A DNA stretch of 62,918 bases, filler included, from Choristocarpus tenellus KU-1152 (lineage: Eukaryota > Protista > Phaeophyceae), in the NCBI GenBank assembly GCA_964200185.2. It is 9 parts of 9 records of this genome, joined end to end, with 100 filler letters (N's around TTAATTAATTAA, not from the genome) between each part and the next. Parts side by side here need not be neighbours in the genome. Positions count along the whole stretch, not along the records: positions 20,901 to 35,808 come from CAXNAD020001098.1; 8 more parts are not named here. One strand, given 5' to 3'. A model generated the notes under the pieces. The model was not told the DNA's origin and made no database searches. It saw nothing but the letters and a program-made list of their open reading frames with translations. Positions 20,750 through 36,000 of the stretch are shown in pieces. The position numbers and the translations under genes were made by a program. Each line of letters opens with the position of its first letter. Position 1 is the first letter of the stretch.

Positions 20750-20934
20750 CTGGGAAAAAACAGGGGGGGGGGGGGCAGGGGGGGGGGGGGAGGGGTAAAA
20801 NNNNNNNNNNNNNNNNNNNNNNNNNNNNNNNNNNNNNNNNNNNNTTAATTAATTAANNNNNNNNNNNNNNNNNNNNNNNNNNNNNNNNNNNNNNNNNNNN
20901 ACATGGACAAAAAAAAAAGGATGAATCATAGCAC

Positions 20935-21657
20935 GAGCACCATAAACAGGTAGTTGGAGGATATAGGGGCAATACAAAACCCCCACTTGATCAAACCCAA
21001 CATTAAGCTGTGGCAAAAGGTACGGAGAACGGACTTCTCATGTGTGTGCACCTCAAACACAACAGATAGGACAAGCAAGAACCATAAAAAGGAGATTGTT
21101 TATGACCAGAACTATACATTACATCTTTTGTGGTACAGGAAGTGGTACACAGTGGAGATACTACCTCCAAAGTCTGGTGGCAGCACCTCCTCCGAGTACG
21201 ACTTCCAGTACCACAAATGATCTAATGCATAGCTCTGCTCATAGATAACTTTCTTTTTATGGTTCTAGCTTTCTTGCCTGCCATTTTTAGCACAAAAACA
21301 AATTAAACACTTCCCATCAGAGCTGCGAAGCACATCTCGACGGGCGTTGGCTGCAATGATTATGGTCTTGGGTGTATGACTCTTGACCAGCACAATAATA
21401 GGCCTCCCTGAAAAGTCACTATCATTCTCATGTGGTAATACGTCAATTCAACCCTTTCCCCATCAGCAATTACATAAAACCAGACGTCCGCCATTAAAAT
21501 TGTATTTGCCGTGGAGGCATACTGACCACATTTCAGATTAACTTCGTCGTAAACAAAGTTCAATCCCTGTACCTTTTGCCACAATTTAAGCTCGGGTTTG
21601 ATCCGGCGGCGATACGGCATAACCGCCATATCATCCAAGGACATGATTTTGGTGCTC
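20935..21657. repeat. Nested long inverted repeats: outer arms 20935-21037 and 21555-21657; inner foldback 21073-21271
   Basis: Outer arms align without gaps (shared GATCAAACCC...TGTGGCAAAAGGTAC). The inner palindrome is gapless around ~21172 with ~97-bp arms. Confidence 0.85.
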
Positions 21658-21929
21658 ACGTTATATAATTGATTCCCTTGGTGACCCATCTCCATTGCAA
21701 CCTGACCCACTGTGGATGACCGATTTTCACAGTTGATACTATGTATGACTGCATCTTAGCATGAGGTCTGAAGGCCGCCGACTAGGTGCCGCCACTCCAG
21801 AAGTGTGCGGCCATCGGCTAGCTAGTCAACAACGTTCCGCAAGAACCCTGGCATCTAACGCTCGGATACACCAAACTTCACAGCTCAACGTGTCCCAGCA
21901 GTTCATTTCTTCTTTACGAACAAATATAT

Positions 21930-24900
21930 TGAAGAATATTAAAAGAATTCTCACCTACCTCACCCCGAACTATCTCACACAAACCATTCATCATCCAAGA
22001 ATGGTTTTCCTCTGTGAACCAATCAGTACACGGTGAAGTTTGCCAGAGCAAATACCGGCGCAGCTCGGTGAGATGCCTTTCTGCAGAAGAAGATATTGTC
22101 ATACTCTCGTACCAACTATGAACACTGCCTCTTCGGTGTTTCACAATTAGGTTTCGTTTCCAAATTTGATGCATTGACCAAAGGAAGTTGGAAAGGCTTC
22201 AAAAAAAGTCCCTACTTCTCAATATTACTCCAGACAAGTCAGTCCGTACACAACGACATTAGCCTGTGCCAACAACGGTGGAGATTCGCCAGAAGCCTCC
22301 ATACAAACGAACACCTTATGATGCTGACATATCAAGGGTAACCTCTGTTCTATATGAAAAGCAAAGTTTCATGTTCCCATCACGATATCCTTTAGCAAGA
22401 TAAGTTGGACTTCCAACATCTCAGTTTTGCTATGAAAATAGACATCTTATCCAACTCAGTCGATGTTATCCCAAGCAGACCAGTCAGTACACAATGAGGT
22501 TTGCCTGTGCCCATACCGATAAAGATGGGTAAGATGCCTCTTCAAAGAAGAAGATAGTGCCATACTTCCGTACCAACAACGTAAAAAGATATCTTACCCA
22601 ACTGAAACGATATTATCTCACAAAAGACAGCCACTACAACAAGAGCTTTGCCTGTGCCTTTGCCTGATGAGCTGGGTAGGAAACGCCTTTAAGAAAGAAA
22701 AAAATATCATCATTTCCACCAATCTTTACCGGTAATGGTTTGATTTCTTCTTTTAATTAAGATATTCACTAACAAAGAATAGAAGCCATCAAACATATAC
22801 CTAGTTATACTCAGAAAACAGACATCCTTCTTAACTCAGCCAATATTATCCCAAGCAAACCAGATATTACACAGTAAGGTTTGCCATAGCTAATACAGCT
22901 GTAGTTCACCAGATGCATCGGTACGAAACCAATCTAATTAGACTGTTACACCAATCAAGAATACTGACTCTTCGGTGTTCGATAGATGGGTTTCGTATCC
23001 AAAATTAATATATTGACCAACAAAAGTTGGAAGACTTCAAACAACCCCTTAGTTGTCCTCTGCAAATAAACAGCTTCGAAAATAAATCGTACCTAGCTCA
23101 TCCGATATTATCTCGGACAAACCAGTCCTTACACAATGAATGAGGTTTGCCAGTGCCAATACCAGCGTAGCTTTCCAAGTGCCTTTACAGAAGAACAATA
23201 TCTCATCATGCTCCCATATCCAGCGTAATCATTCTTTTATGTGCAAGCTTACTGTTCTTTCTTTCACAACATCAAACAACTAAAGTATAAAACTTCCAAT
23301 ATATCCTCAGTTATGCTCAGAAAAAAGAGATTGTACCTAGCTCATCCGATATTATCTCCAACAAACCAGTCACTACAAAGTAAGGTTTGATATAGTCAAT
23401 ACCGGTGGAGCTGGGCAAGACATCTTACAAAGAACATCTAATTAGTCTTTACAATAATCAAGACTACTCACTCTTCCCTGTTCGATAGTTAGGTTTTGTT
23501 TCCACAATTAATATATTGACAAACAAAAGTTGGAAGACTTCAAACAACCTCCTAGTTGTCCACTACAATAGGAATATGACTTAGCTCATTCAATATTATC
23601 TCAGACAAACCTGTCCTAACGCAATTAGATTTGCCAGTGCCAATACCAGCAGAGCTTGCCAACATGCCTGTTTACAAAAGAACAAAATCTCATCATGCTC
23701 CCACATCCACCGTGACCATTCTTTATGTACAAGCTTAACGTTCTTCACTTCAAGATATTGACAAACCACCATTTAAAAACTTCCAACATATCCTCAGTTA
23801 TGCTCTGAAAAAAGAGATCGTACCTAGCTCAACCGATATTATCTCCAACAAACCAGTCACTACAAAGTAAGGATTGCCATAGCCAATACCGGTGGAGCTG
23901 GGGAAGACACCTTCTTACAAAAGAACAAAATCTAATTAGACTGTTGTACCAATCAAGACTACTCACTTTTCCGTGTTCGATAATTAGATGTTTCCACAGT
24001 TAATATATTGACCAACAGAAATTATAAGACTTCAAACAACCCCCTTCTTGTCCTCTACAAATAGACATCTGACCTAGCTCATCCGATATTATTTCAGACA
24101 AACCAGTCCTTACGCAATGAGGTTTGCCAGAGCCAATACCAGCGAAGCTTACCAAGATTCCTCTTTACAAGAGAACAAAACCTCATCTGTCTCCCACATC
24201 CATCGTAATCCATTCTTTATGTGCAAGCTTAACGTTCTACAATTCACGATATTGATCAACCAAGATTTAAAAACTTCCCCAACATTTCCTCAGTTATGCT
24301 CAGAAAAAAGGGATCGTACCAAGTTCAACCGATATTATCTCCAACAAACCAGTCACTACAAAGTAAGGTTTGGTATAGTCAATACCGGTGGAGCTTGGGA
24401 AGACACCTTACAAAATAACATAATCTAATTAGTCTTTACAATAATCAAGATTACTCCCTCTTCCGTGTTCGATAATTAGGTTTTGTTTCCACAATTAATA
24501 TATTGACCAACAAAAGTTGGAAGACTTCAAACAACTCCCTAGTTGTCTACTACAAATAGGAATATGAACTAGCTCATCTAATATTATCTCCGACAAACCT
24601 GTCCTTACGCAATTAGGTTTGCCAGTGCCAATACCAGCAGAGCTTGCCAACATGCCTGTTTACAAAAGAACAAAATCTCATAATGCTCCCACATCCAGAG
24701 TAACCATTCTTTATGTGCCAGTTCAACGTTCTTCCAACGTTCACATCACGATATTGACAAAACATTTAAAAACTTCCAACATATCCTTAGTTATGCTCCC
24801 GAAAAAGAGATCGTACCTAGCTCGTCCGATATTATCTCCAACAAACCAGTCCCTACAAAGCAAGGTTTGCTATAGCCAATACCGGTGAAGCTGGAAAAGA

Positions 24901-27900
24901 AACGTTCTTACAGAAGTACGAAATTTAGTTAAACATTTCTTCGATGGTTGATAGGTTTTGTTTCCACAGCTGATATATTGACCAACAAAAGTTGGAAGAC
25001 TGAAGACTACACACTATATGTGCTCTGCAAAATAAACATCTAATCTTGTTCATCCGAGATAATCTCAGACAAAGCAGTCCTTACGCAATGAGGTTTGCCA
25101 GTTCCAATAACAGCTGAACTTGCCACGATGCTTCTTTACAAAAGAACAAAATCTCATCATCCTCCCATATTCAGCGTAACCATTCTTTTATGTGCAAGCC
25201 TAACGCTCTTCCCTTCACAATATTGATCAATCAAAATTAAAAAAACTTCCAACATATCCTCATTTAAGCTCTGCGAAAAGTTATCGTACCTAGCTCAACC
25301 GATATTATCTCCAACAAACCAGTCAGTACAAAGTAAGGTTTGCCAATGCCAATACCGGTGGAGCTGGGGAAGACACCTTAGAGAAGAACAGAATATAATT
25401 GGACTTCAAAAACATCAATCCTACTCATTCTTCGGTGTTCGATATTTACTTTTGTATCCACAATATATCGATCAACAAAAATTGGAAGACTTCAAACAAC
25501 CCCATTGTTTTCCTCTGCAAATAGACATCTGACCTCGCTCATTCCATATTATCTCAAACAAACCAGTCCTTACACAAGGACGTTTGCCAGTGTCAATACC
25601 AGAGCATGTCAAGATACCTCTTTACAGAAGCAAAAAATCTCATCATGCTCCCATATCCAGCATAATCGTTCTTTTATGTGCAAGCTTAACTTTCTTCAAT
25701 GTACGATACTGACCAACAAAAATTAAAAATTTCCAACATATCCTCAGTTATGCTCTGAAAAAGGAGATCGTACCATGCTCATCAGATATTATCTCCAACG
25801 AACCAGTCACTACAGAGTAAGGTTTGCCATAGCCAATACCGGTGGAGATGGGCAAGACACTTTCTTACTGAAGTACAGAATCTAATTCGATGTTGGACAG
25901 TTAAGTGTTGTTCACACAATATATTGACCAACAAAAATTGGAAGACCTCAAACAACCCCATAGTTGTCCTCTTCAGATGAACATCTGACCTAGCCCATCC
26001 GATATTATCTCAGACAAAACAGTCCTTACACATTGAGGTTTGCCAGTGCAAATACAAGCGAAGAACAAAATCATATCAGGCTCCAATATCAAGCGTAACC
26101 ATTGCTATGTGCAAACTTAAGGTTCTTCAATGCACGAAATTGACCAACATTTAAAGACTTTAAATGTATCCTCAGTTACGCTCCGAAAAAAGAGACCGTG
26201 ACTAGCTCATCCGCTGGTGACTAGCTCATCCGATAGTATCTCTACCAACCCAGTCACTACAAAGTAAGGTTTGCCAGTGCCAATACCGGCTGAGCTGGGG
26301 AAGACACCTTACAGAAGAACAGAATCTAAATCAACTTTATACCAAGAATACTCACTCTTCAGTGTTCGATAGTTAGGTTTCGTTTCCACAATTAATATAT
26401 TGACCAACAAAAGTCAGAAGACTTCAAACAACCCCCTAGGTGTCCTCTGTAAATAGACGTAGCTTCAAAAAGAAATCGTACCTACCTCTTCCGATCCTAC
26501 CCTTAGACAAACCAGTACTTACGCAATTAGTTTTACCAGTGCTAACACTAGCAGAGCTTGCCATGATATCTCTTTACAGAAGAACAAAATCCCATCATGC
26601 TCCCATATCCAGCGTAATCATTCGTTTATATGCATGCTTAACGTTCGACAATTCACGATATTGAACAACCAAAGATTTAAAAACTTCCAACATGTTCTCA
26701 GTTAAGCTCTGAAAATAGAGATCGTACCAAGCTCAACCAGTATTATCTCCAAAAAACCAGTCACTACAAAGTAAGGTTTGCCAGTGCCAATACCGATTGA
26801 GCTTGGAAAGACACCTTCCTACAGAAGAACAAAATCTAGTAAGACTTTATAACAATCCATTCTACTCACTCCTCAATGTTCCATAGGTTTCGTTTGCACA
26901 ATTATATATTGACCAACAAAAGTTGGAAGACTTCAAACAAGCCCCAAGTTGTCCTCTGCAAATAGACATCTGACCTAGCTCATCCGATATCATCACAGAC
27001 AAAACAGTCCATAAATAATGAGTTTTCCCAGTGCCAATACCAGCAGAGATTGCAAAGATGTCTCTTCACAGAAGAACAAAATCTCATCATGCTCCAATAT
27101 CCAGCGTGATGAATCTTTTATGTGCAAGCTTAACGTTCTACAATTCACGATATTGACTAACATCAGTTAAAAAACTTCCAACATATCCTCAGTTATGCTC
27201 TGAAAAAAGAGATCTTACCGAGCTCAACCGGTATTATCTCCAACAAACCAGTCACTACAAAGTAAGGTTTGCCAGTGCCAATACCGATTGAGCTTGGAAA
27301 GACCCCTTCCTACAGAAGAACAAAATCTAGTAAGACTTTATAACAATCAATACTACTCACTCTTCAATGTTTGATAGGTTTCCTTTCCACAATTATATAA
27401 ACAAACAAAAGTTAGAAGACTTCAAACAAGCCCCTAGTTGTCCTCTGCAAATAGAAATGTGACCACGCTCATCTAATATTATCAGATTAACCAGTCCTTA
27501 CGCAATGAGGTTTGCCGGTGCCAATGACAGCAGAGCTTGCCAAGATGCCTCTCTACAGAACAACAAAATCTCATCTTGCTCCCACATCCATCGTAAACCA
27601 TTCTTTCATATGCAAGCTTAACGTTCGACAATTCACGATATTGATCAACGTAAATTTCATAATTTCCAACATATCCTCAGTTATGCTCTGAAAATAGAGA
27701 TCTTACCTAGCTCAACCGGTATTATCTCCAACAAACCAGTCAATACAAAGTAAGGTTTGCCAGTGCCAATACCGGTGGAGCTTGGAAAGACACCTTCCTA
27801 CAGAAGAACAAAATCTAGTAAGACTTTATAACAATCAATTCTACTCACTCTTCAATGTTTGATAGGTTTCGTTTGCACAATTATATATTGACCAACAAAA

Positions 27901-30330
27901 GTTGGAAGACTTCAAACAAGCCCCCAGTTGTCTTCTGCAAATAGACATCTGACCTAGCTCATCTAATATTATTTCAGACAAAACAGTCCATACGCAATGA
28001 GTTTTCCCAGTGCCAATACCAGCGGAGATTGCAAAGATGTCTCTTCACAGAAGAACAAAATCTCATCATTCTCCCATATCCAGCGTGATGAATCTTTTAT
28101 GTGCAAGCTTACTGTTCTACAATTCACGATATTGACTAACATCAGTTAAAAAACTTCCAACATATCCTCAGTTATGCTCTGAAAAAAGAGATCTTACCGA
28201 GCTCTACCGGTATTATCCCCAACAAACCAGTCACTACAAAGTAAGGTTTGCCAGTGCCAATACCGGTGGAGCTTGGAAAGACACCTTCCTACAGAAGAAC
28301 AAAATCTAGTAAGACTTTATAACAATCAATTCTACTCACTCCTCAGTGTTCGATAGGTTTCGTTTGCACAATTATATATTGAACAACAAAAGTTGGAAGA
28401 CTTCAAACAAGCCCCCAGTTGTCCTCTGCAAATAGACATCTGACCTAGCTCATCCGATATTATTTCAGACAAACCAGTCCATACGCAATGAGTTTTCCCA
28501 GTGCCAATACCAGCGGAGATTGCGAAGATGTCTCTTCACAGAATAACAAAATCTCATCATGCTCCCATATCCAGCGTGATGAATCTTTTATGTGCAAGCT
28601 TGATGTTCTTGATTTCACGATACTAAACAACCAAAATTAAAAAACTTTCAACATATCCTCAGTTATGCTCTGAAAAGATAGATCGTACCTAGCTAATCCG
28701 ATATTATCTCCAACAAACCAGTCACTACAAAGTAAGGTTTGCCAGTGCCAATACCGGCGGAGCTGGGTAAAATGCCTCCCTACAGAACAACAAAATCTTA
28801 TGATAGTCTCCCATATCAAGCATAAACATAGACATAGTCTATGTGTACGGTTAGGTTTATTCTTTAAATCACGATTTTGACCAACCAAAAATTGGAGACC
28901 TCCAACACTTCCCCAGTTATGCTCTGGAAATAGACATCTTGCCCGGTTCATCCGATATTATTCCAATAAAGCCAGTCAGTACACGATGAGTTTTGCCTGT
29001 GCCATTACCGTTGGATTCCGTTAGATGCCTCTTTATAGAAGAACAATGTATCAATACACTCCTTTAACGATCAAAAATAATTGTTCTTGGGTGTGCAATG
29101 GTTAGGTTTCTTTTCCAAAATTAATGTGATGTCCAATAAATTGAGGACATCCAACATATTTCTATTTCTCTGAAAAATAGACATCTACCTAGCTCATCAA
29201 ATACTATCCCAAGCAAACAAGTGATTACACAATGAAATTTGGCTCTGCCAATATCAGTGCAGCCTGGTAAGATCTCTTTGTGCAGAAGAAGATATTGCCA
29301 TACTCCCAGAACAGTCAAGACTTCTCGTTCTTCAGTGTTCGATGGTTGGGTATCGTTCCAACTATTAATGTGTTGAACAACAAAAGTAAAGGCTTCAAAT
29401 AATCCCCTAGTTGTCCTCTGAACTGAGATGTCTTACCAAGCTCATGCAATATTATTTCAAGCAAACCAGTCCGTACACAATGTTGTTTGCTTGCGCCAAT
29501 TCCAGTTGAGCTGGGTCTGATGCCTCTTTACAGAACAAAAGATCCGATGATACTCCCATATGAAGCATAATCATTACTGTATGTTCAAGGTTAGGTTTGT
29601 GGAATCACGATATTGACCAAAATTGTAACACTTCCATAATCTCCCCATATTTGCTTTGAAAAAAGACATCTTACCTATCTTATCCAATTTTATCCTTAGC
29701 AAACCGGGCAGTACAAAATGAATTTTGTCTGTGCCAATACCGGTGGAGCTGGTTAAGATGCCTCTTTACAGAAGAATTAAACTTTCGCATACGCCTCTGT
29801 CTAGTATTCCTATTATTTGAAGTTAAAGGTTACGTTTCTTTCTCAAATTAAGATACGGATTAACAAAATTTCTGAAGTCAACCATCTTGCCAGTTGCGCT
29901 CTGAAGAAATATATCTTACCCAACTCATCCAATATTATCTTAGACAAACCGGTCATTACACAATGAGGTTTGCCTGTGCCAATACGGGTGGAGCTGGGGG
30001 AAATGCCTCTTTACAGGGAATCAGATACCGTGAACCTACAATGCAAAGTTACTAACAAATTCAAGGTACATCATGTGGTTTTTAAAATACATACTTGTCT
30101 AACGAGATAAATGCTTGGTACAGTTCTTTCAATTACCCCCCTAGTAATTGAACTCTTTCCACCAGATACTATTCCAAACGCATCACTCATTTACAAGGAC
30201 GGTTTTATGTGCTAATACCTATCTTTTTTGGTAGTGCATCAAACTAGTTATGATAGATAAGGTTTGCCTGCGCCAATATTTTAGCTTTCGGCGATGACCT
30301 TGTACGGAAGAATTGTATCTTGTTAGGAGG
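21930..30330. repeat. Tandem array of ~34-36 monomers of ~245 bp (A/B dimer ~490 bp in the centre), each with an internal imperfect inverted repeat
   Basis: Recurrent core ...ACCTAGCTCATCCGATATTATCTC...CAAACCAGTC..TAC..A.T.AGGTTTGCC.GTGCCAATACC.G.GGAGCT.GG.AAGA... B-type loops recur at about 26761, 27252, 27741, 28231 and 28722. Confidence 0.95.
21930..30330 (-). ncRNA. Putative polycistronic pre-miRNA/hairpin-RNA cluster with LRR-antisense arms
   Basis: ~50-bp stems with a short terminal loop in each monomer; A.C mismatches on + become G.U pairs on -; one arm spells PIPxELGK with wobble-position variation. Function is inferred, with no expression data. Confidence 0.55.
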
Positions 30331-30729
30331 TCACCCATGCTGAACCGGAGTAGCGACATTGGTACTTAACTCTTTGACACTAAAAGTATATAGAGCAATT
30401 TAACTTAATCTTGAGATTAGCAAGTAGATGATCACCACCTTTTTTTGTAGGTGCATTTTAGATAAATTGAGCAGTAACATGATGGGTCAAAGTTGCACTA
30501 AACAAACCTCATGGCACTGGATAGGTTTAAGATCATGCAAAAGAGTTCTTACATTGGAGATTCCTGTGACAGTCAGACGGTTATGACCAATGTTTTACTG
30601 CTGTTCTTGAGCAATCAAAAATATGTGCAAGTGATATTAAGAAAAGCTGCACTTATTTTTACCTGTTGGTAACACGTCTGAAGATAATCGTCCATAACAT
30701 TCACACTAAGAAAGGATGTACATGCTCAC

Positions 30730-33038
30730 CTTGGTAACATCTTCCTCTTTCTGGAAGACCACGTACGCATTTACAGTATCTTTCACCTCTTGGGCCACCT
30801 TCCCTTTGTTTACACAAACCTTTCGAACAAGATCCTGATTTAAAACAGGCGCAGGGAAACACTTAGAAAAAAATAATTTTAACATTGCATCCACAAGCCA
30901 TCTTTATTTTAGGTCAAAAAAAAAATCATTTGAGGGTTGAAATGAAATGTTACATTTGTTTTTATATGTACTTACTACCCAGTCCATACGAAGAGAAGTC
31001 TCAGATCCAAGCACACTCATCAAAAATATCTAAATGTAACACCTGATTGCCAGCTTTATCCACAGCAAGTCCATCCACCGCAACAGACCGTATCCGAACA
31101 GACACTATCTTTCCGAAGCCCTTGAAGAATGAGCGTATCTTCTTGGGGTTGACACTTGCTGGCAGATTGCCCACGAAGATGGTATGATTCAATTTAACCT
31201 GGTCTGTTGTTACGTTTGCCTCCACAGTCTCAACACCGTTTTTGTTCACCTGTTGATCCATGACTTCTTTTGAACTTGCATGTCTTGTTCCTAGCTCCTT
31301 TACCATTTGCCGAAACAAAGAACAAGAATGACAATACCAAGATAGAAGGAAGGAGGAGGAAGGAGAGAGAGCTGGGAAAGGCTGATAAGAGTTTTCTAAA
31401 ATTCAAACGTCACATTTTCAATCCTTCTGCAAACCATGTTGATATTTCCTAGTTCAAAGCAGGTACCAATTTTTCTCACTTCTGGAAGTTAAGCATATAC
31501 AACTCATATTCCACAAGCCAGTCACTGTTTACTACTTCGTTGAATATAGTCAAACCTCTTCATTGAAGCTTTCATTGCCCTTTCCAGAGACAACGCTTTC
31601 TGGTTCACTTTCAAGATCCCCGTTGTCTTCGTCGGTTCCCTCAGACCAATCACCTTCCTCTTCCTTTAAATCACTCGCCCCGCTGACCCCACTGACTGGA
31701 CACTCTTTTTCTTTTAATTGATTTCTTTTCTCGAGCTCTATCTGCTTCATTAAAAGCTCCATGCTCTTAGTCTTTCTTTCTGCCGCCTGTTTTGCCCTTC
31801 GTGACAAAAAAAACAATGTAGGGCAAGTGACACATGAATCAGTTACAACCACAAGGGATGCCTTGCACCAAAAATTATAGGCAATTCACCATGAACACAT
31901 GGGATTCAACACACAGTTGTGTGAAGAAAAGACTAAAGTACAAGGGGAATATACCACCAGTGCAAGGCACTTACCTTGTGTTATGAAAATTTAAAAGAAA
32001 AATATAGTCGGACAAATGCACACTTCTGAGGAATTAAAAAAGGAACTAGAAACCTGGAAAACTGGGGAAATTCATGACCAAAGCGGAGGAAAAGGTAAAC
32101 CTAGAAAACGTCCTGGTCAGGACTATTGGCAAAGCCCCTCCCTTGCAAAGAAGAGTCCAGTGCAATTTTAAAAAATGTAGCATCTTCACCCTCTACGTAT
32201 GTGTGAGAGTCATATCTCACCTGATCTCCTGAAATTCAACCTCTCGTTTCTTAGCTTTCTTGTTCTTTTTTTTTATTCCCATAGTTTCCTCCTCCTGCCT
32301 CTTCTCTCTCTCTCGAGCGTCCTTAGTTATCCGTTCAACCTGCGGGATGGAACGATGTATCGAAAAAAGTTAATTAGCACACATTTAGGTAAAGATCGCG
32401 TTAACAAACGAACACCTTGCAGGACCTCGATCATACGAAGATTTCCCCGTAGTAACACCCGCACAGGGGGGAATAGGCTTCAGCATTCAACATCTATCGT
32501 AATTGTCCTGTGACTGAACAATTCACCAATTCAAATGAAAGATATTCTTCGGTGTGAGGCAAGAGGTACACGCAATTATAACCATATCCTCTACAAGGAC
32601 ACGAGACCATATTCGCATGTACCTTTCGTCTCTCCTCCCAAGTCTCTACAAGGTAATAACAATTGAACCCAACCCATCACTATAGTGATTATTCCCCCCA
32701 CCAGACCCACCCACCTCCACAGCATCAGACTCCTTATCCTCGCGCTCCTTCCGCTTGAATCTATTCAAATTCTTCGTGGAGAAAAGGGACGTCAAACCTA
32801 TCGGACTCGAACCATACACCACATTTTTCTTAGGTTCTCCAGCTGCGGAGAGCTCTCCGTCGTCATTCGCTTTCGAACGTGAAGAATGGTACTCCGGAGT
32901 TACAGACATTTTTGACTGAACAGATGTTACCGCAGACTCTCCAGAAAAGGTCCCGGCATTATAATTTTTCCCAACCTTATCATCTCGAAGAAGAAAGGAG
33001 GACAGGAGACCTGGACGATATGTCCCATCTCCAGCCAT
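30730..33038 (-). CDS. RBM34: RBM34/Nop12-like nucleolar RRM protein, 5' part (exons 33038-32715, possible 21-nt microexon ~32643-32623, 32339-32221, 31796-31556, 31297-31043, 30834-30730)
   Basis: K/E-rich N-terminus, then RRM1 TIFVGNLPASVNPKKIRSFFKGFGKIVSVRIRS...VRKVCVNKG...TVNAYVVFQKEEDVTK with the Nop12-type insertion. Intron phases are consistent. The end of RRM1 and RRM2 were not found. Confidence 0.85.
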
Positions 33039-36000
33039 GAACTCCTTGTCGCGTGAGGTTAATCTGTTCGTTAACGGATTGTAATTTGATGGACACGACT
33101 CTGCCCTACTATATGATAAGCGCCAACATCCCCTCCCTCACCTACCACCACCCATCACAACATTGTCTCATTTTTTTTTATCAAAGTAATCAGCCAATAA
33201 ATCTATCGACCATTCACAAATATCCATACATTTCTGTTCGGGAACTACGTGTAATAATTGATTAAATTGAAATCAAGACCAAGAGGTACAGTAAAGTTGT
33301 ACTATATCAAAATTGGAACACTTTGGTATGTTTGTGCGATACTTGTAAGTGGGTTTAGAAATCAATGATTAGTGTGTTTGTACAAAATGAAATTCATTTC
33401 TGCTATTTTTCTAAACTCACTTAAACCTTACATTACAAACACAGTCACCTCAACCTGGTTTAATGAAGCTCAATGAATCTATTCTTCGTCCTACTTTGAC
33501 CTTACCAGATCTTGATGATTTAGAATCCCCGGTATCCATTGGTCTTTATATTACAATTGTTGGATACAATATTGGTCATGGACCTAGTTCTATAAACATA
33601 GAATATAGGTTACACCTTCAAATGTATTCTATCGTTCAGGTGATTTGCTACAATGTACAGAAATGATTTCTGTTACATTCACTTGTTATCAACTCTGATC
33701 TATTAAAAGTTTCCATATACACTACCTTCCCCGATTTCGTTCACCCATGGGCATGCCGAAAAAAGCTGCACAGAATTGATGTGGTACAATATCATTTTTG
33801 TAGTCATTCAATCGTGGTTAGCCGAATACGAGAATTCCGGTACAAAAGCCTATTTTTTGAGCATGTCGAAAAAAGAGGTACAAAATTGAATATTTTTCGA
33901 TTTGGTTGATAATAGTTGGCACAACATCGGGGTAGGTACTGTACTTTTGTTTCATTCAATGAATTGGGGTTGTGTTGTTAAATATCAATATTGTTTTTTA
34001 CATAGATGTTTGTTCTGACTTATATCAACTTATGTCAAATGATTTTTTTTTCCTTTTTATATGTCCTCCTATGAATAAACGAAGAGCGAAGTTCATTTTT
34101 CAAAATAACTCTGCACACTAATTTAATTTTTTATTATTTCTTCGGGAAAACTGTTCTGTTCAACAGTTATTTATGGGCAATCCAATCCCCATATTTGTCC
34201 ACAGAATAAAACCTTTTCCAACTTTATTTATTACTGATTGATTACAACAAGTACATACTATTTGGTGTTGCAACTAAACAGCTCTAATTTGATCACGATT
34301 TCTGGGTAGGAGTCTCCCATGATTTTTTTCCCCTTCTCATTGGAGATGATGGTCCATGTTTTTGCATCTGTATCAACTTGATGGAGATAACAGGACTTCA
34401 TGCTAAGACTACCTTGTCCCTTCTTGCCCATGCCCCTTTTCACGTTGAAGATTTGACTAGACGTAATCATATCCGATGCATCGAAATCGTGATCTTTCCA
34501 TGTGCACAGATATGTTTATTATCTCTCCCCTAATCAAATTGAAGTGACACTGATTTGGTTGCCACCGAATCGATCTTAGTGATAAGTGCTAAGCTGTTAG
34601 GCCTCACGAAAAACTCTTTTTTGTTCTACATTTTTGGAAATATCCAGATATTTTTGTGTGCACAACCGTCTTGCAAAACATTATCTCCTTGTTAATATAC
34701 TTTTTTTTTTCCTTCAATGGTCAGGTCAGTTTTTCTGGACACACACTTCCTCCATTTCCCATTGACACCTGTGTTCTTTTGATACCTAGATCAAACCACA
34801 TACAGGGGGGGGGGGTGTGATGTGAGAGCCATCTTCAAAGAGGATATACTTTGAAGGTAATGTATCTTGAAGAATCTGATATTCTTCTGGATTTGTTTTT
34901 GCATGTTGAAGGTAGCATCTGCTTGAAGTAAATAGGGGGTGGTTTGAGGGGACCTTATAAGGCTCCCTCATTCCCTTTGCCACTTGTTAACTCTTTTCCT
35001 GAATGATGTTCTGAGGGATTGCTCCCCCTCTTGTCTTGTCTCTCTCCTTTTCCTTGCCTCCTATGCGTCTTCCCGCTCCCCTTCAGTACGAAGAACCTAT
35101 CAGCTTGTTTCCATCTGTTTCACAAACCCCTGTAAAACTCTTGTCGTAAATGTAAAGTATATCTTTTTATAATCAATTTACTATTTTGACTACCAGGTAT
35201 GTTATATCACTGTGATAGGAGAACACTCGGCCCCTTGAATACCTCCGTGGTGGTGATCAAGTGCTGCAGCTCGTTCCTGGAAAGATTTGGGGTCATCTCC
35301 GGTGTCTCCCGATGCTTGGGGTCATTCTAAATAGTCATGTTACAAACTCCTGGATGCTCCCTCCATGCTACATGGGCGAACCTTTCCTCCCTCGATAACT
35401 TTCCATCACTGTCCAGTAGAAGGCCAGAGACAGGTGAAGGAGCTTGGACGCTCTGATAGCCTATTATTAGGGTCGCCCCTTCTAGACTTGGGGTGGTTAC
35501 TTCATGCATCAGGAGATCCACTGTGTGCATGAGGGTGATCACATGGGCGCTGCAAAGCATACCAGGGACCTTTGTAACCGTGGTGATGTTTACCCACTCC
35601 AGGATCTCCACCTGGACTTGGTCAAGGACAGAAGCAACACTTGGTGTATGAACGCCCCATGGCAGACACGAATGTGGGGTTAGGTGACCTAGATTTTCTG
35701 GGAGGAGGGGAGTGGGGTAGTGGGGGGGCGGAGGTGGGGGTGGTGGTGGTGGTGGTAGTGGGTGTTGGGGTGGGGAGGAGGGTGGGGGGGGGTGGGGTGG
35801 AGGGAGTGNNNNNNNNNNNNNNNNNNNNNNNNNNNNNNNNNNNNNNNNNNNNTTAATTAATTAANNNNNNNNNNNNNNNNNNNNNNNNNNNNNNNNNNNN
35901 NNNNNNNNGTGAGGACGGTCAATGGAAGGTGGGCCTTTTTCACAGTACATTCCTTGCGATCATAAGGTGATCGAATACGGCGTGCACCTGTTGCTTGAGT

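Follow-up and report, generated by a model that had tools for sequence, protein, structure and literature searches.

A 35-copy tandem array of hairpin repeats, with arms resembling part of an LRR motif, in a long intron of an RBM34/Nop12-like gene of Choristocarpus tenellus

A tandem array of 35 head-to-tail monomers of ~245 bp each was found at positions ~21940-30330 of the window (the whole stretch of 62,918 nucleotides of Choristocarpus tenellus DNA that was analysed), within a long intron of a minus-strand RBM34/Nop12-like RRM gene. The array structure is real and unusual; production of miRNAs, or control of LRR genes, is only a candidate role suggested by the sequence. On balance we favour the view that the array is a locus-specific non-coding tandem repeat within a long intron of an expressed gene, and as an intronic hairpin repeat it would be at most a nascent siRNA or miRNA source. 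The array and its surroundings can be divided as follows:

20901 to 30729, minus strand: part of the long intron of the host gene, with the whole array inside; cut off on the left where the piece ends
21940 to 30330, no strand: whole tandem array, 35 monomers of ~245 bp
21940 to 23100, no strand: degenerate left edge (m01-m05), including one short unit of 147 bp; 50-70% identity to other monomers
23101 to 28790, no strand: homogenised core of ~12 A/B dimers, a ~490-bp higher-order repeat (Tandem Repeats Finder periods of 495 and 491, and the identity pattern)
28791 to 30330, no strand: degenerate right edge (m29 tail to m35), where the arm readings are the most LRR-like of all copies

Monomer starts were called with a 20-nt right-arm anchor, which matched at 35 starts running from 22037 to 30261, mostly 240-250 bp apart, and at one stray position (23170) within a monomer. 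Tandem Repeats Finder reported a period of 495 at 22931-25887 (79% matches) and one of 491 at 26223-28798 (86% matches). Anchor search, Tandem Repeats Finder and alignment thus bear out the ~34-36 monomers described in a first-pass annotation of this DNA. Two monomer types (A and B) alternate along the array, with identities of 75-97% within a type and 60-67% between types; in the core, copies two units apart are 76-97% identical and adjacent copies 58-67%. The end copies were rightly called degenerate in the first-pass annotation, since m01-m04 and m29-m35 share only 50-70% identity with the other monomers. The left edge aligns to the right edge over 500 nt at 60-66%, and the leftmost partial arm (21942-22014) aligns to 29907-29978, a mutual likeness of the two edges that agrees with unequal crossing-over. 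All features expected of a tandem repeat generated by unequal crossing-over are present: head-to-tail copies, a higher-order unit, a homogenised core and degenerate edges. The dimer consensus has stops in all frames.

An assembly artefact is ruled out by exact independent contigs. Two DNA runs reproduce the array sequence with 0 differences each (for example an X1 contig over 28729-31999 and an X2 contig over 28729-29473), and the right edge (28791-30330) is represented by exact DNA contigs in both of them as well as by exact contigs in X3, a cDNA-containing run, one of three runs of unrecorded kind. The depth of DNA contigs over the array is 20-33, compared with 23.1 in the unique flank, which corresponds to a single copy, and only 1% (0.01 in X1) of the array-matching sequence continues into unlike DNA at >=80% likeness. 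The repeat is therefore confined to one locus, and the genome-wide satellite that the first-pass annotation had named as an outcome speaking against its proposal was not found. Metagenome contigs scanned for two patterns, the palindrome core and the right arm, gave 0 matches, and the array is absent from the 1.5-5 kb past the orthologous RRM exon in contigs of two relatives (L001 and L002; GC 56%). No homologue of a full-monomer ORF appeared in a word-indexed protein search, and ARAGORN detected neither a tRNA nor a SINE head in the array.

The host gene was delineated from splice joints in X3 and from similarity to its closest named relative, which is from Ectocarpus and therefore makes a brown-alga context plausible:

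30730 to 30833, minus strand: host exon, middle of RRM1; joint 30833^31042 at depth 791 in X3; tblastn to Ectocarpus CAB1110081.1 residues 362-391
31042 to 31296, minus strand: host exon, start of RRM1; joints 30833^31042 and 31296^31555; Pfam RRM_1, E 1.1e-7; tblastn 57% to Ectocarpus
31555 to 31798, minus strand: host exon, acidic region; joint 31296^31555; tblastn residues 228-263
32712 to 33038, minus strand: first coding exon, ATG at 33038; ORF; tblastn to Ectocarpus residues 6-128, E 3e-10

The first coding exon shares the motif YRPGLLSS with the Ectocarpus relative. A contig has a loose end at 31798, where the following letters match the window from 32223. In X3, exon 30730-30833 is spliced to an exon that is absent from the piece: the contig runs past 30729 with 27 nt encoding AICANGMEF, homologous to Ectocarpus ALAANGTDV, and these 27 nt occur nowhere within the window. 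A relaxed tblastn search of 20901-30750 for the second RRM gave nothing credible. Since the edge of the piece truncates the intron on the left, its length is a lower bound (at least 9.8 kb). A further nested foldback element sits in this intron, at 20928-21664.

The host mRNA skips the whole array, and the X3 contigs that cover it are collinear with the genome and unspliced, at a depth of 4-35 versus 400-830 on the exons (~1-3%). The array thus travels as a passive part of the host pre-mRNA; the lack of transcription that the first-pass annotation had named as speaking against its proposal was not observed. Unlike the array intron, another intron of the host gene showed no RNA depth in the one bin covered (31800-31999), a difference that hints that the array RNA persists or is made independently.

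Folding was predicted in windows of 124 nt centred on the inverted repeat, with z-scores relative to dinucleotide shuffles. On the minus strand, which is the host sense strand of the transcribed intron, the predicted energies range from -24 to -63 kcal/mol, and z is at or below -2 in 20 of the 35 monomers, versus 13 of 35 on the plus strand; control spacer windows of about the same size (n=26) reached this value 0 times on the minus and 3 times on the plus strand. The imperfect inverted repeat noted earlier in most monomers, and the RNAfold comparison of both strands proposed with it, hence yield predicted stem-loops that form better on the minus strand. Representative hairpins are:

27194 to 27317, minus strand: m23, the best hairpin, a nearly perfect stem of ~50 bp; -63.4 kcal/mol and z -9.5 on minus, -39.8 and z -7.1 on plus
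27682 to 27805, minus strand: m25 (A type); -48.9 kcal/mol, z -5.4 on minus
27929 to 28052, minus strand: m26 (B type), with large internal loops; -38.4 kcal/mol and z -3.3 on minus, z -0.7 on plus
28173 to 28296, minus strand: m27; -57.3 kcal/mol, z -7.0 on minus
~29895 to 30020, minus strand: m34; -40.2 kcal/mol and z -3.5 to -3.7 on minus, -33.7 and z -1.4 to -1.7 on plus

The last of these had been singled out as the clear example (29899-30016), and it does fold (-40.2 kcal/mol on minus); the 21-mer that had been quoted as a possible guide is the exact reverse complement of 28751-28771. The stems measure 45-55 bp and the total foldbacks ~110-125 nt. A 21-nt window with at least 17 paired bases, the pairing asked of a canonical miRNA locus (Tarver et al. 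2015), is present in 26/35 units on the minus strand and in 12/35 on the plus strand, and in the host sense orientation up to ~26 of the 35 units are thus predicted to form stem-loops. The same scheme also asks for reads of both the miRNA and its miRNA*, for 2-nt 3' overhangs, and for a 5' end shared by at least 66% of reads. Nine of the 35 copies have no such window on the minus strand, z lies above -2 there in 15/35, and between roughly one quarter and one third of all copies no longer fold.

The comparative evidence on these hairpins is divided. RNAalifold returned an empty consensus structure for 31 hairpins, and when the hairpin was imposed on the alignment the pairing was 82.0% versus 80.4% in column shuffles. 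Cells changed on both sides numbered 37, compared with 19 in the shuffles (0/500 of which reached 37), and one clean compensatory pair (C-G to U-A) separates the A and B types. Comparison of the diverged types by phase-shifted pairwise alignment gave conservation values of 0.76 for the inner arms, 0.69 for the loop, 0.67-0.70 for the outer arms and 0.60 for the spacer. The much stronger contrast in the multiple alignment (arms 0.8, spacer 0.2-0.5) was rejected as partly an artefact of alignment and anchoring. Conservation varies little along the young dimers (0.8-0.97) and is highest in the loop. A search of Rfam 15 with E up to 1 gave no family at gathering score; the best match within the array was MIR1508, at 27.7 bits versus 70 required, and the sub-threshold matches are miRNA-like noise. 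The hairpins are not mirtrons: an acceptor-like site lies 5' and a donor-like site 3' of each, which is the reverse of the order needed.

The right arm reads LPVPIPVELGK(M/T) on the plus strand and the left arm reads GLSEIISDELGQM on the minus strand, in agreement with the first report. The arms match the LRR half-motif L-S/T-G-x-I-P-x-E-L-G-x-L at 7/9 positions (P ~0.001-0.005 versus shuffles), a match that seems unlikely to have arisen by chance. The proposed likeness to the plant-type LRR therefore holds for the GxIPxELGxL half, but not beyond it: Pfam searches of eight arm-containing ORFs with E up to 10 found no LRR or other domain, and the LxxLxLxxN core was not found in any frame. Among the contigs that share the arms at >=80% likeness none came from another locus or from an LRR gene, and a donor LRR gene was not found. 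The possibility that the plus strand holds a functional LRR gene was rejected because an in-frame TAA or TGA directly precedes the arm in the copies read by hand. An array of 72-nt type I (ROCO-type) LRR exons was rejected as well: splice-like sites on the minus strand are 87-91 nt apart, and the plus-strand candidates span 54 or 74 nt, with a stop just upstream of the arm according to hand counts.

The origin of a passive intronic repeat of this kind may be envisaged as follows. A fragment of ~55 nt, plausibly LRR-coding (L-x-G-x-I-P-x-E-L-G-K-M), would have been duplicated in inverted orientation, and the palindrome together with ~125 bp of spacer would then have been amplified by unequal crossing-over, so that the edge copies would be old and diverged and the core young and homogenised. 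At the molecular level, most likely nothing would follow, or the longest stems would be diced heterogeneously and at a low level, in a way comparable to the 'weak miRNA candidates' of palindromic Ectocarpus regions and not to a precisely processed polycistronic miRNA cluster. The array anatomy, the single-copy depth at one locus, the intronic position, the unspliced RNA, the flat conservation of the dimers, the well-kept loop, the empty RNAalifold structure, the near-shuffle level of pairing, the copies without a well-paired window, the stops in all frames of the dimer consensus, the pN/pS of 0.74-0.87 in the one open frame, the negative Rfam search and the rarity of miRNA clusters in Ectocarpus count in favour of the passive repeat, which as a whole we consider somewhat probable. 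Five observations count against it: the inner arms exceed the outer arms, the loop and the spacer in conservation, which a purely neutral repeat does not predict; double changes are in excess and include one compensatory pair; the host sense strand folds consistently better even after the dinucleotide-shuffle control; the array intron shows RNA depth where a bin of another host intron shows none; and the half-motif match of the arms is unlikely to be a chance event.

In a rival reading, which we regard as doubtful, the array would be a functional small-RNA cluster: Dicer would release miRNA-like or hairpin-siRNA species from its hairpins, transcribed either with the host intron or separately from the minus strand. 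Array RNA is present in X3, 26/35 units have a sufficiently paired window on the minus strand, and the stems and foldbacks fall within the range of the long foldbacks of Ectocarpus (mean 170 nt; PMC4513859). The inner arms are better kept than the spacers, with some covariation, the arms resemble the LRR half-motif, and Ectocarpus small RNAs predicted to target LRR exons have been reported (PMC3341825). However, a consensus fold was not found by RNAalifold, Rfam gave no match, the loop is conserved to the same degree as the outer arms, large internal loops interrupt the B-type stems and decay has affected many copies. Moreover, families or clusters are hardly ever seen among bona fide brown-algal miRNAs (for Ectocarpus, where they are rare, see PMC4513859), and the majority of earlier candidates have since been dismissed as siRNAs, most of the original set among them. 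In Ectocarpus, complex palindromic regions yield many heterogeneous small RNAs (PMC4513859).

The first-pass annotation went further, and proposed that 5p-arm products antisense to IPxELG-coding sequence repress LRR/ROCO mRNAs in trans. Among the contigs at >=80%, none was seen to carry an LRR gene similar to the arms in nucleotide sequence. The 'bank of LRR-antisense guides' is kept here as a hypothesis, because of the empty RNAalifold structure, the pairing close to shuffles, the loop conserved like the outer arms, the decayed copies, the negative Pfam result, the rarity of miRNA families and clusters in Ectocarpus and the fact that no donor gene was found. That ~20-26 hairpins of a polycistronic cluster in the RBM34-like intron give rise to 21-nt guides antisense to the IPxELG part of LRR receptor genes seems to us quite improbable.

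Equally little credence is given to a MITE-like element, in which the right and left arms would be terminal inverted repeats around ~125 bp, tandemly amplified with 16-nt linkers. The unit can indeed be read as TIR-internal-TIR, a nested foldback element (20928-21664) lies in the same intron, and MITE-derived satellites and MITE-derived miRNAs are known. However, no dispersed copies were found (contigs mapping at >=80% come almost entirely from the array), the metagenome contigs gave no matches, target-site duplications are not evident in the alignment, and no transposase or related ORF was found.

Least likely of all, in our judgement, is an exon-per-repeat coding region, or a pseudogene of one, like the brown-algal ROCO LRR or NB-ARC TPR exon arrays. 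On the minus strand it would consist of hairpin cassettes of 87-91 nt between an acceptor-like polypyrimidine-AG and a donor-like AG/GTAAGA, separated by 'introns' of ~158 nt and encoding 29-residue repeats. An AG at -39 and a GT at +48 with an open frame occur in 17/34 units, the length of 87 nt is divisible by 3, a single frame is open in 29/34 units versus 1 and 3 for the other frames (28/29 simulation-kept units, where ~21.4 would be expected under random substitution), and Ectocarpus is known to have exon-per-repeat arrays whose introns contain inverted copies. Yet the pN/pS of 0.74-0.87 in the one open frame and the variability by codon position (0.157/0.155/0.191) amount to no real coding signature, Pfam domains and the LxxLxLxxN core were not found, the units are not 72 nt, the RNA contigs are unspliced across the array without a ~158-nt joint, and the host mRNA skips the array entirely.

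Among known systems, the 'weak miRNA candidates' of Ectocarpus (Tarver et al. 2015, PMC4513859) are similar in being extensive palindromes, often intragenic and on the host strand, that can give hairpins with the required pairing; they are viewed as nascent miRNA or siRNA sources. They were defined by small-RNA reads, whereas the array is known from its sequence and predicted folding, and they are not described as a regular 35-copy tandem array with a fixed period of 245 bp. The type I LRR exon arrays of brown-algal ROCO genes (Zambounis et al. 2012, PMC3341825; Teng et al. 2024, PMC11378527) likewise combine a regular repeat with a spacer over tens of units, with a GxIPxxL motif and LRR pieces in both orientations. 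Inverted non-coding LRR exons lie within introns of these genes (PMC3341825; PMC11378527), and targeting of LRR exons by small RNAs was at one time predicted (PMC3341825). In contrast to the ROCO arrays, our units are not 72-nt exons and lack the LxxLxLxxN core and a Pfam LRR, unit splicing is not seen, and the host encodes an RRM protein, not an LRR protein. As outlined for Arabidopsis MIR161/MIR163 in the inverted-duplication model (Allen 2004, cited in PMC4513859), the arms are inverted copies of what looks like a coding fragment (LxGxIPxELGKM) and the youngest copies have long, nearly perfect stems; unlike in that outline, the similarity is at motif level only (7/9), a founder gene was not found among contigs at >=80%, and the hairpin is amplified ~35-fold in tandem.

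Satellite and minisatellite DNA with dyad symmetry shares with the array the head-to-tail monomers, the A/B higher-order unit, the homogenised centre and the decayed edges, but the array is restricted to one intron at single-copy depth and its hairpin part is somewhat better conserved than the spacer. The tandem miRNA clusters of animals (zebrafish mir-430, primate C19MC) contain dozens of regularly spaced hairpins per transcription unit, sometimes intronic, and give abundant discrete mature products. They resemble the array in hairpin number, regular period and single transcription unit, although the lineages are unrelated; their arms are more conserved than their loops, whereas the loop of the array (0.69) equals the outer arms (0.67-0.70) and is exceeded by the inner arms (0.76).

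The array is of interest against a background in which brown-algal miRNAs have been reported with almost no families or clusters, and in which no settlement was reached on earlier claims for small RNAs directed against LRR exons. If the guide hypothesis were true, a stramenopile would possess, for its LRR repertoire, a bank of regulators that has been amplified and evolves fast, an independently arisen parallel to the control of NBS-LRR genes by plant miR482/2118. If nothing is processed, the array is a clear example of a palindromic higher-order tandem repeat restricted to a single intron, and it warns that a hairpin and a motif likeness are no evidence of a miRNA. It offers a test case for the birth of hairpin genes from coding fragments, and for tandem amplification as a route to a bank of regulators.

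The tandem array at ~21940-30330, composed of 35 monomers (m01-m35) of ~245 bp, is a real and locus-specific structure that is intronic, lies in the sense orientation of its host gene and is carried in RNA. A 20-nt right-arm anchor placed the 35 monomer starts between 22037 and 30261 in the piece 20901-35808, with a spacing of mostly 240-250 bp, and Tandem Repeats Finder returned periods of 495 (22931-25887) and 491 (26223-28798). Multiple alignment separated two monomer types, A and B, in alternation: units of the same type are 75-97% identical, units of different types 60-67%, and the outer copies m01-m04 and m29-m35 50-70%. The regular array with degenerate end copies described in the first-pass annotation is thus borne out. 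Since identities are high within the types and low in the end copies, the A/B dimer core (~23100-28790) is young and homogenised, and both ends consist of old, degenerate copies. The left edge of the array aligns with the right edge over 500 nt (60-66%). Such an anatomy is what unequal crossing-over should leave when it widens an older array from its centre. Along its whole length the array is rich in C and A on the plus strand (GC skew ~-0.2 to -0.3). Unit m19 holds an internal 19-nt duplication of left-arm sequence at 26200-26240 (GTGACTAGCTCATCCGCTG GTGACTAGCTCATCCGAT), an example of small-scale slippage inside the array.

The locus is present in three sequencing runs of one study, two with the behaviour of DNA (X1, X2) and one that contains cDNA (X3). 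Contig depth in X1 is 20-33 over the array versus 23.1 in the unique flank, only 1% of the X1 sequence matched to the array region continues into unlike DNA (likeness threshold 80%), and other monomers of the array itself account for almost every loose end and 'go back' joint. The repeat is therefore neither a genome-wide satellite nor a dispersed element; the former was among the findings that the first-pass annotation had named as speaking against its own proposal. A contig of X2 follows the array from 26999 on, but the 30 nt before that point (TTTCATGCCCAACATCCCCAGAGATCTCTT) are absent from the window; the X2 sample may carry a structurally different version of the array, or the contig may stem from one related fragment at another place in the genome.

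The host gene and a second palindromic structure near the array have the following coordinates.

Features beside the array in the piece 20901-35808
30730-33038, minus strand: RBM34/Nop12-like RRM gene (tblastn, Pfam, X3 joints)
30834-31041, minus strand: host-gene intron supported by RNA (X3)
31297-31554, minus strand: host-gene intron supported by RNA (X3)
31799-32222, minus strand: host-gene intron supported by RNA (X3)
20928-21036 / 21556-21664: outer inverted repeat of a foldback element, 109 nt, 71% complementary
21073-21169 / 21175-21271: inner long hairpin of the foldback element, 97-nt arms, 79%, 5-nt gap

A tblastn search with the Ectocarpus protein CAB1110081.1 matched the locus at 33023-32712, 31660-31553, 31204-31037 and 30840-30751, and Pfam recognised RRM_1 in the ORF 31004-31318. 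The closest named relative is from Ectocarpus (56-57% in the RRM exon); Logan contigs with a GC of 56% reach 72% and carry no array in the 1.5-5 kb beyond the exon. The X3 joints 30833^31042 and 31296^31555, at a depth of ~800, read CT..AC on the plus strand and hence GT..AG on the minus strand, and an X3 loose end at 31798 picks up again at 32223. Past 30729 a further X3 contig runs on with 27 nt encoding AICANGMEF, where the Ectocarpus homologue has ALAANGTDV at the same point of RRM1. These 27 nt are absent from the whole window, and a relaxed search of 20901-30750 did not find the second RRM of the gene. Because the next exon of the spliced contig is absent from the window, the array sits in a host-gene intron that measures 9.8 kb or more; the exon after 30730 and the entire second RRM fall outside the piece. 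This implies an unusually long intron beside others of 208-424 nt. X3 contigs that run collinear with the genome cover the array, as well as the intron's unique part, at a depth of 4-35, or 1-3% of exon depth; the bin 31800-31999, in another host intron, has none. Array-containing RNA thus exists, but it is unspliced and not enriched over the neighbouring intron.

The foldback element (20928-21664) lies in the same intron and is unrelated to the array in sequence; its inner hairpin gave the best Rfam match, to mir-606, at a sub-threshold 30.2 bits (80 needed). Two stretches are of low complexity: at the piece's right end, 7 copies of a G-rich simple repeat (GGGGTGGTGGTG; 35714-35797), and a poly-G run near 34806 (34800-34815).

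Every monomer has an imperfect inverted repeat, its arms ~45-55 nt long and its loop ~16 nt. Windows of 124 nt centred on it were folded for all 35 units on both strands and compared with dinucleotide shuffles, which substantiated the hairpins that the first-pass annotation had seen in most monomers and added that minus, the host sense strand, is the better-folding one. Minus-strand hairpins range from -24 to -63 kcal/mol (z <= -2 in 20/35 units) and plus-strand hairpins from -13 to -45 kcal/mol (13/35), whereas z <= -2 was reached by 0/26 minus and 3/26 plus spacer windows. The best folders are A-type (m23, -63.4; m27, -57.3; m25, -48.9 kcal/mol); B-type hairpins have large internal loops and z ~-3, and in about a third of all units the significant fold is gone. 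A 21-nt window with at least 17 paired bases is present in 26 of the 35 units on minus and 12 on plus. Searches of the array returned no Rfam family at its gathering score and, with ARAGORN, no tRNA.

Support for a conserved RNA structure is weak and mixed. RNAalifold returned no structure for 31 hairpins. When the m27 hairpin is imposed on the alignment, 82.0% of cells pair versus 80.4% with partners shuffled within columns, so pairing stems mainly from the palindromic consensus that the copies share. Cells altered on both sides number 37 versus 19 expected (0 of 500 shuffles reach 37), and one clean compensatory pair of the apical helix, C-G to U-A, separates A- from B-type; kinship of the copies alone can yield such an excess. 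In the young dimers identity is nearly flat, with the loop as the best-conserved part. The MSA-based comparison had pointed to strong arm conservation, in part through an artefact of anchoring. When diverged units were aligned pairwise with a shifted phase, identity was 0.76 for the inner arms, 0.67-0.70 for the outer arms, 0.69 for the loop and 0.60 for the spacer; the excess in the hairpin is therefore modest but real, and it does not display the arms-over-loop pattern that established miRNAs have. On the minus strand of 23100-28790, several B-type spacers carry a C-box-like AUGAUGA heptamer ~90 nt upstream of CUGA; as the pair is missing from some copies, lacks a terminal stem and has no Rfam snoRNA match, it is probably due to chance.

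Translated on plus, the arms give LPVPIPVELGK(M/T), with an in-frame stop immediately before the arm in the copies read, and GL(S/L)(E/G)II(S/L)DELG(Q/K)M on minus. The best copies score 7/9 on the strict half-motif L-[ST]-G-x-I-P-x-E-L-G-x-[LM], which 0/1000 dinucleotide shuffles of those units reach; for a looser half-motif P is ~0.003-0.005 in the same best-scoring units, the motif having been picked after reading the arms and the copies amounting to one effective observation. The left arm keeps the G and the right arm the P, a split that fits a common ancestor nearer LxGxIPxELGKM. Pfam found no LRR in any arm-containing ORF, the LxxLxLxxN core is not present in the array, and at 80% likeness or more the arms are common to no contig from another locus. 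Chances are about even that the arms originate from an LRR fragment. A brown-algal type I LRR exon array, defined by 72-nt phase-2 exons (PMC3341825, PMC11378527), was considered and rejected, since the array does not have this organisation.

That the array is a functional small-RNA cluster we consider possible but rather unlikely. The bona fide miRNAs of Ectocarpus (64 loci, 63 families) are mostly intronic, on the host strand and in long foldbacks of ~170 nt, and almost never clustered; another 65 loci, situated in 'complex, extensive palindromic sequences', each give rise to numerous sRNA species and count as weak or nascent candidates (PMC4513859). The array is far closer to this latter class, and to the inverted-duplication model of miRNA birth, than to an established polycistronic miRNA cluster of the kind that the first-pass annotation proposed. 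A cluster specifically targeting LRR genes is very improbable. Candidate miRNA families from the genome paper had at one time been predicted to act on reshuffled LRR exons (PMC3341825), but only six families of that original Ectocarpus set survived re-examination (PMC4513859). A minus-strand coding reading, with each hairpin an exon-like unit, has a low probability. The hairpins are preceded by a polypyrimidine tract and AG and followed by AG|GTAAGA, GTACGA or GTCAGA, the commonest such sites delimiting an 87-nt unit, and one frame is open in 29/34 units; of the 29 units retained for a simulation, 28 have it open, versus ~21.4 expected under uniform random substitution. Against it, pN/pS in this frame lies at 0.74-0.87, codon-position variability is 0.157/0.155/0.191, Pfam found no domain, and RNA contigs pass across them unspliced. 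A protein word search with a full-monomer ORF found no homologue, and both metagenome scans, one for the palindrome core and one for the right arm, were negative; the exon-array reading and a MITE derivation are minor alternatives.

The most probable reading, which we hold at somewhat better than even, is that of a non-coding, hairpin-bearing tandem repeat. An inverted LRR fragment may have been its seed, unequal crossing-over would then have expanded it, and its hairpins would at best be nascent Dicer substrates.
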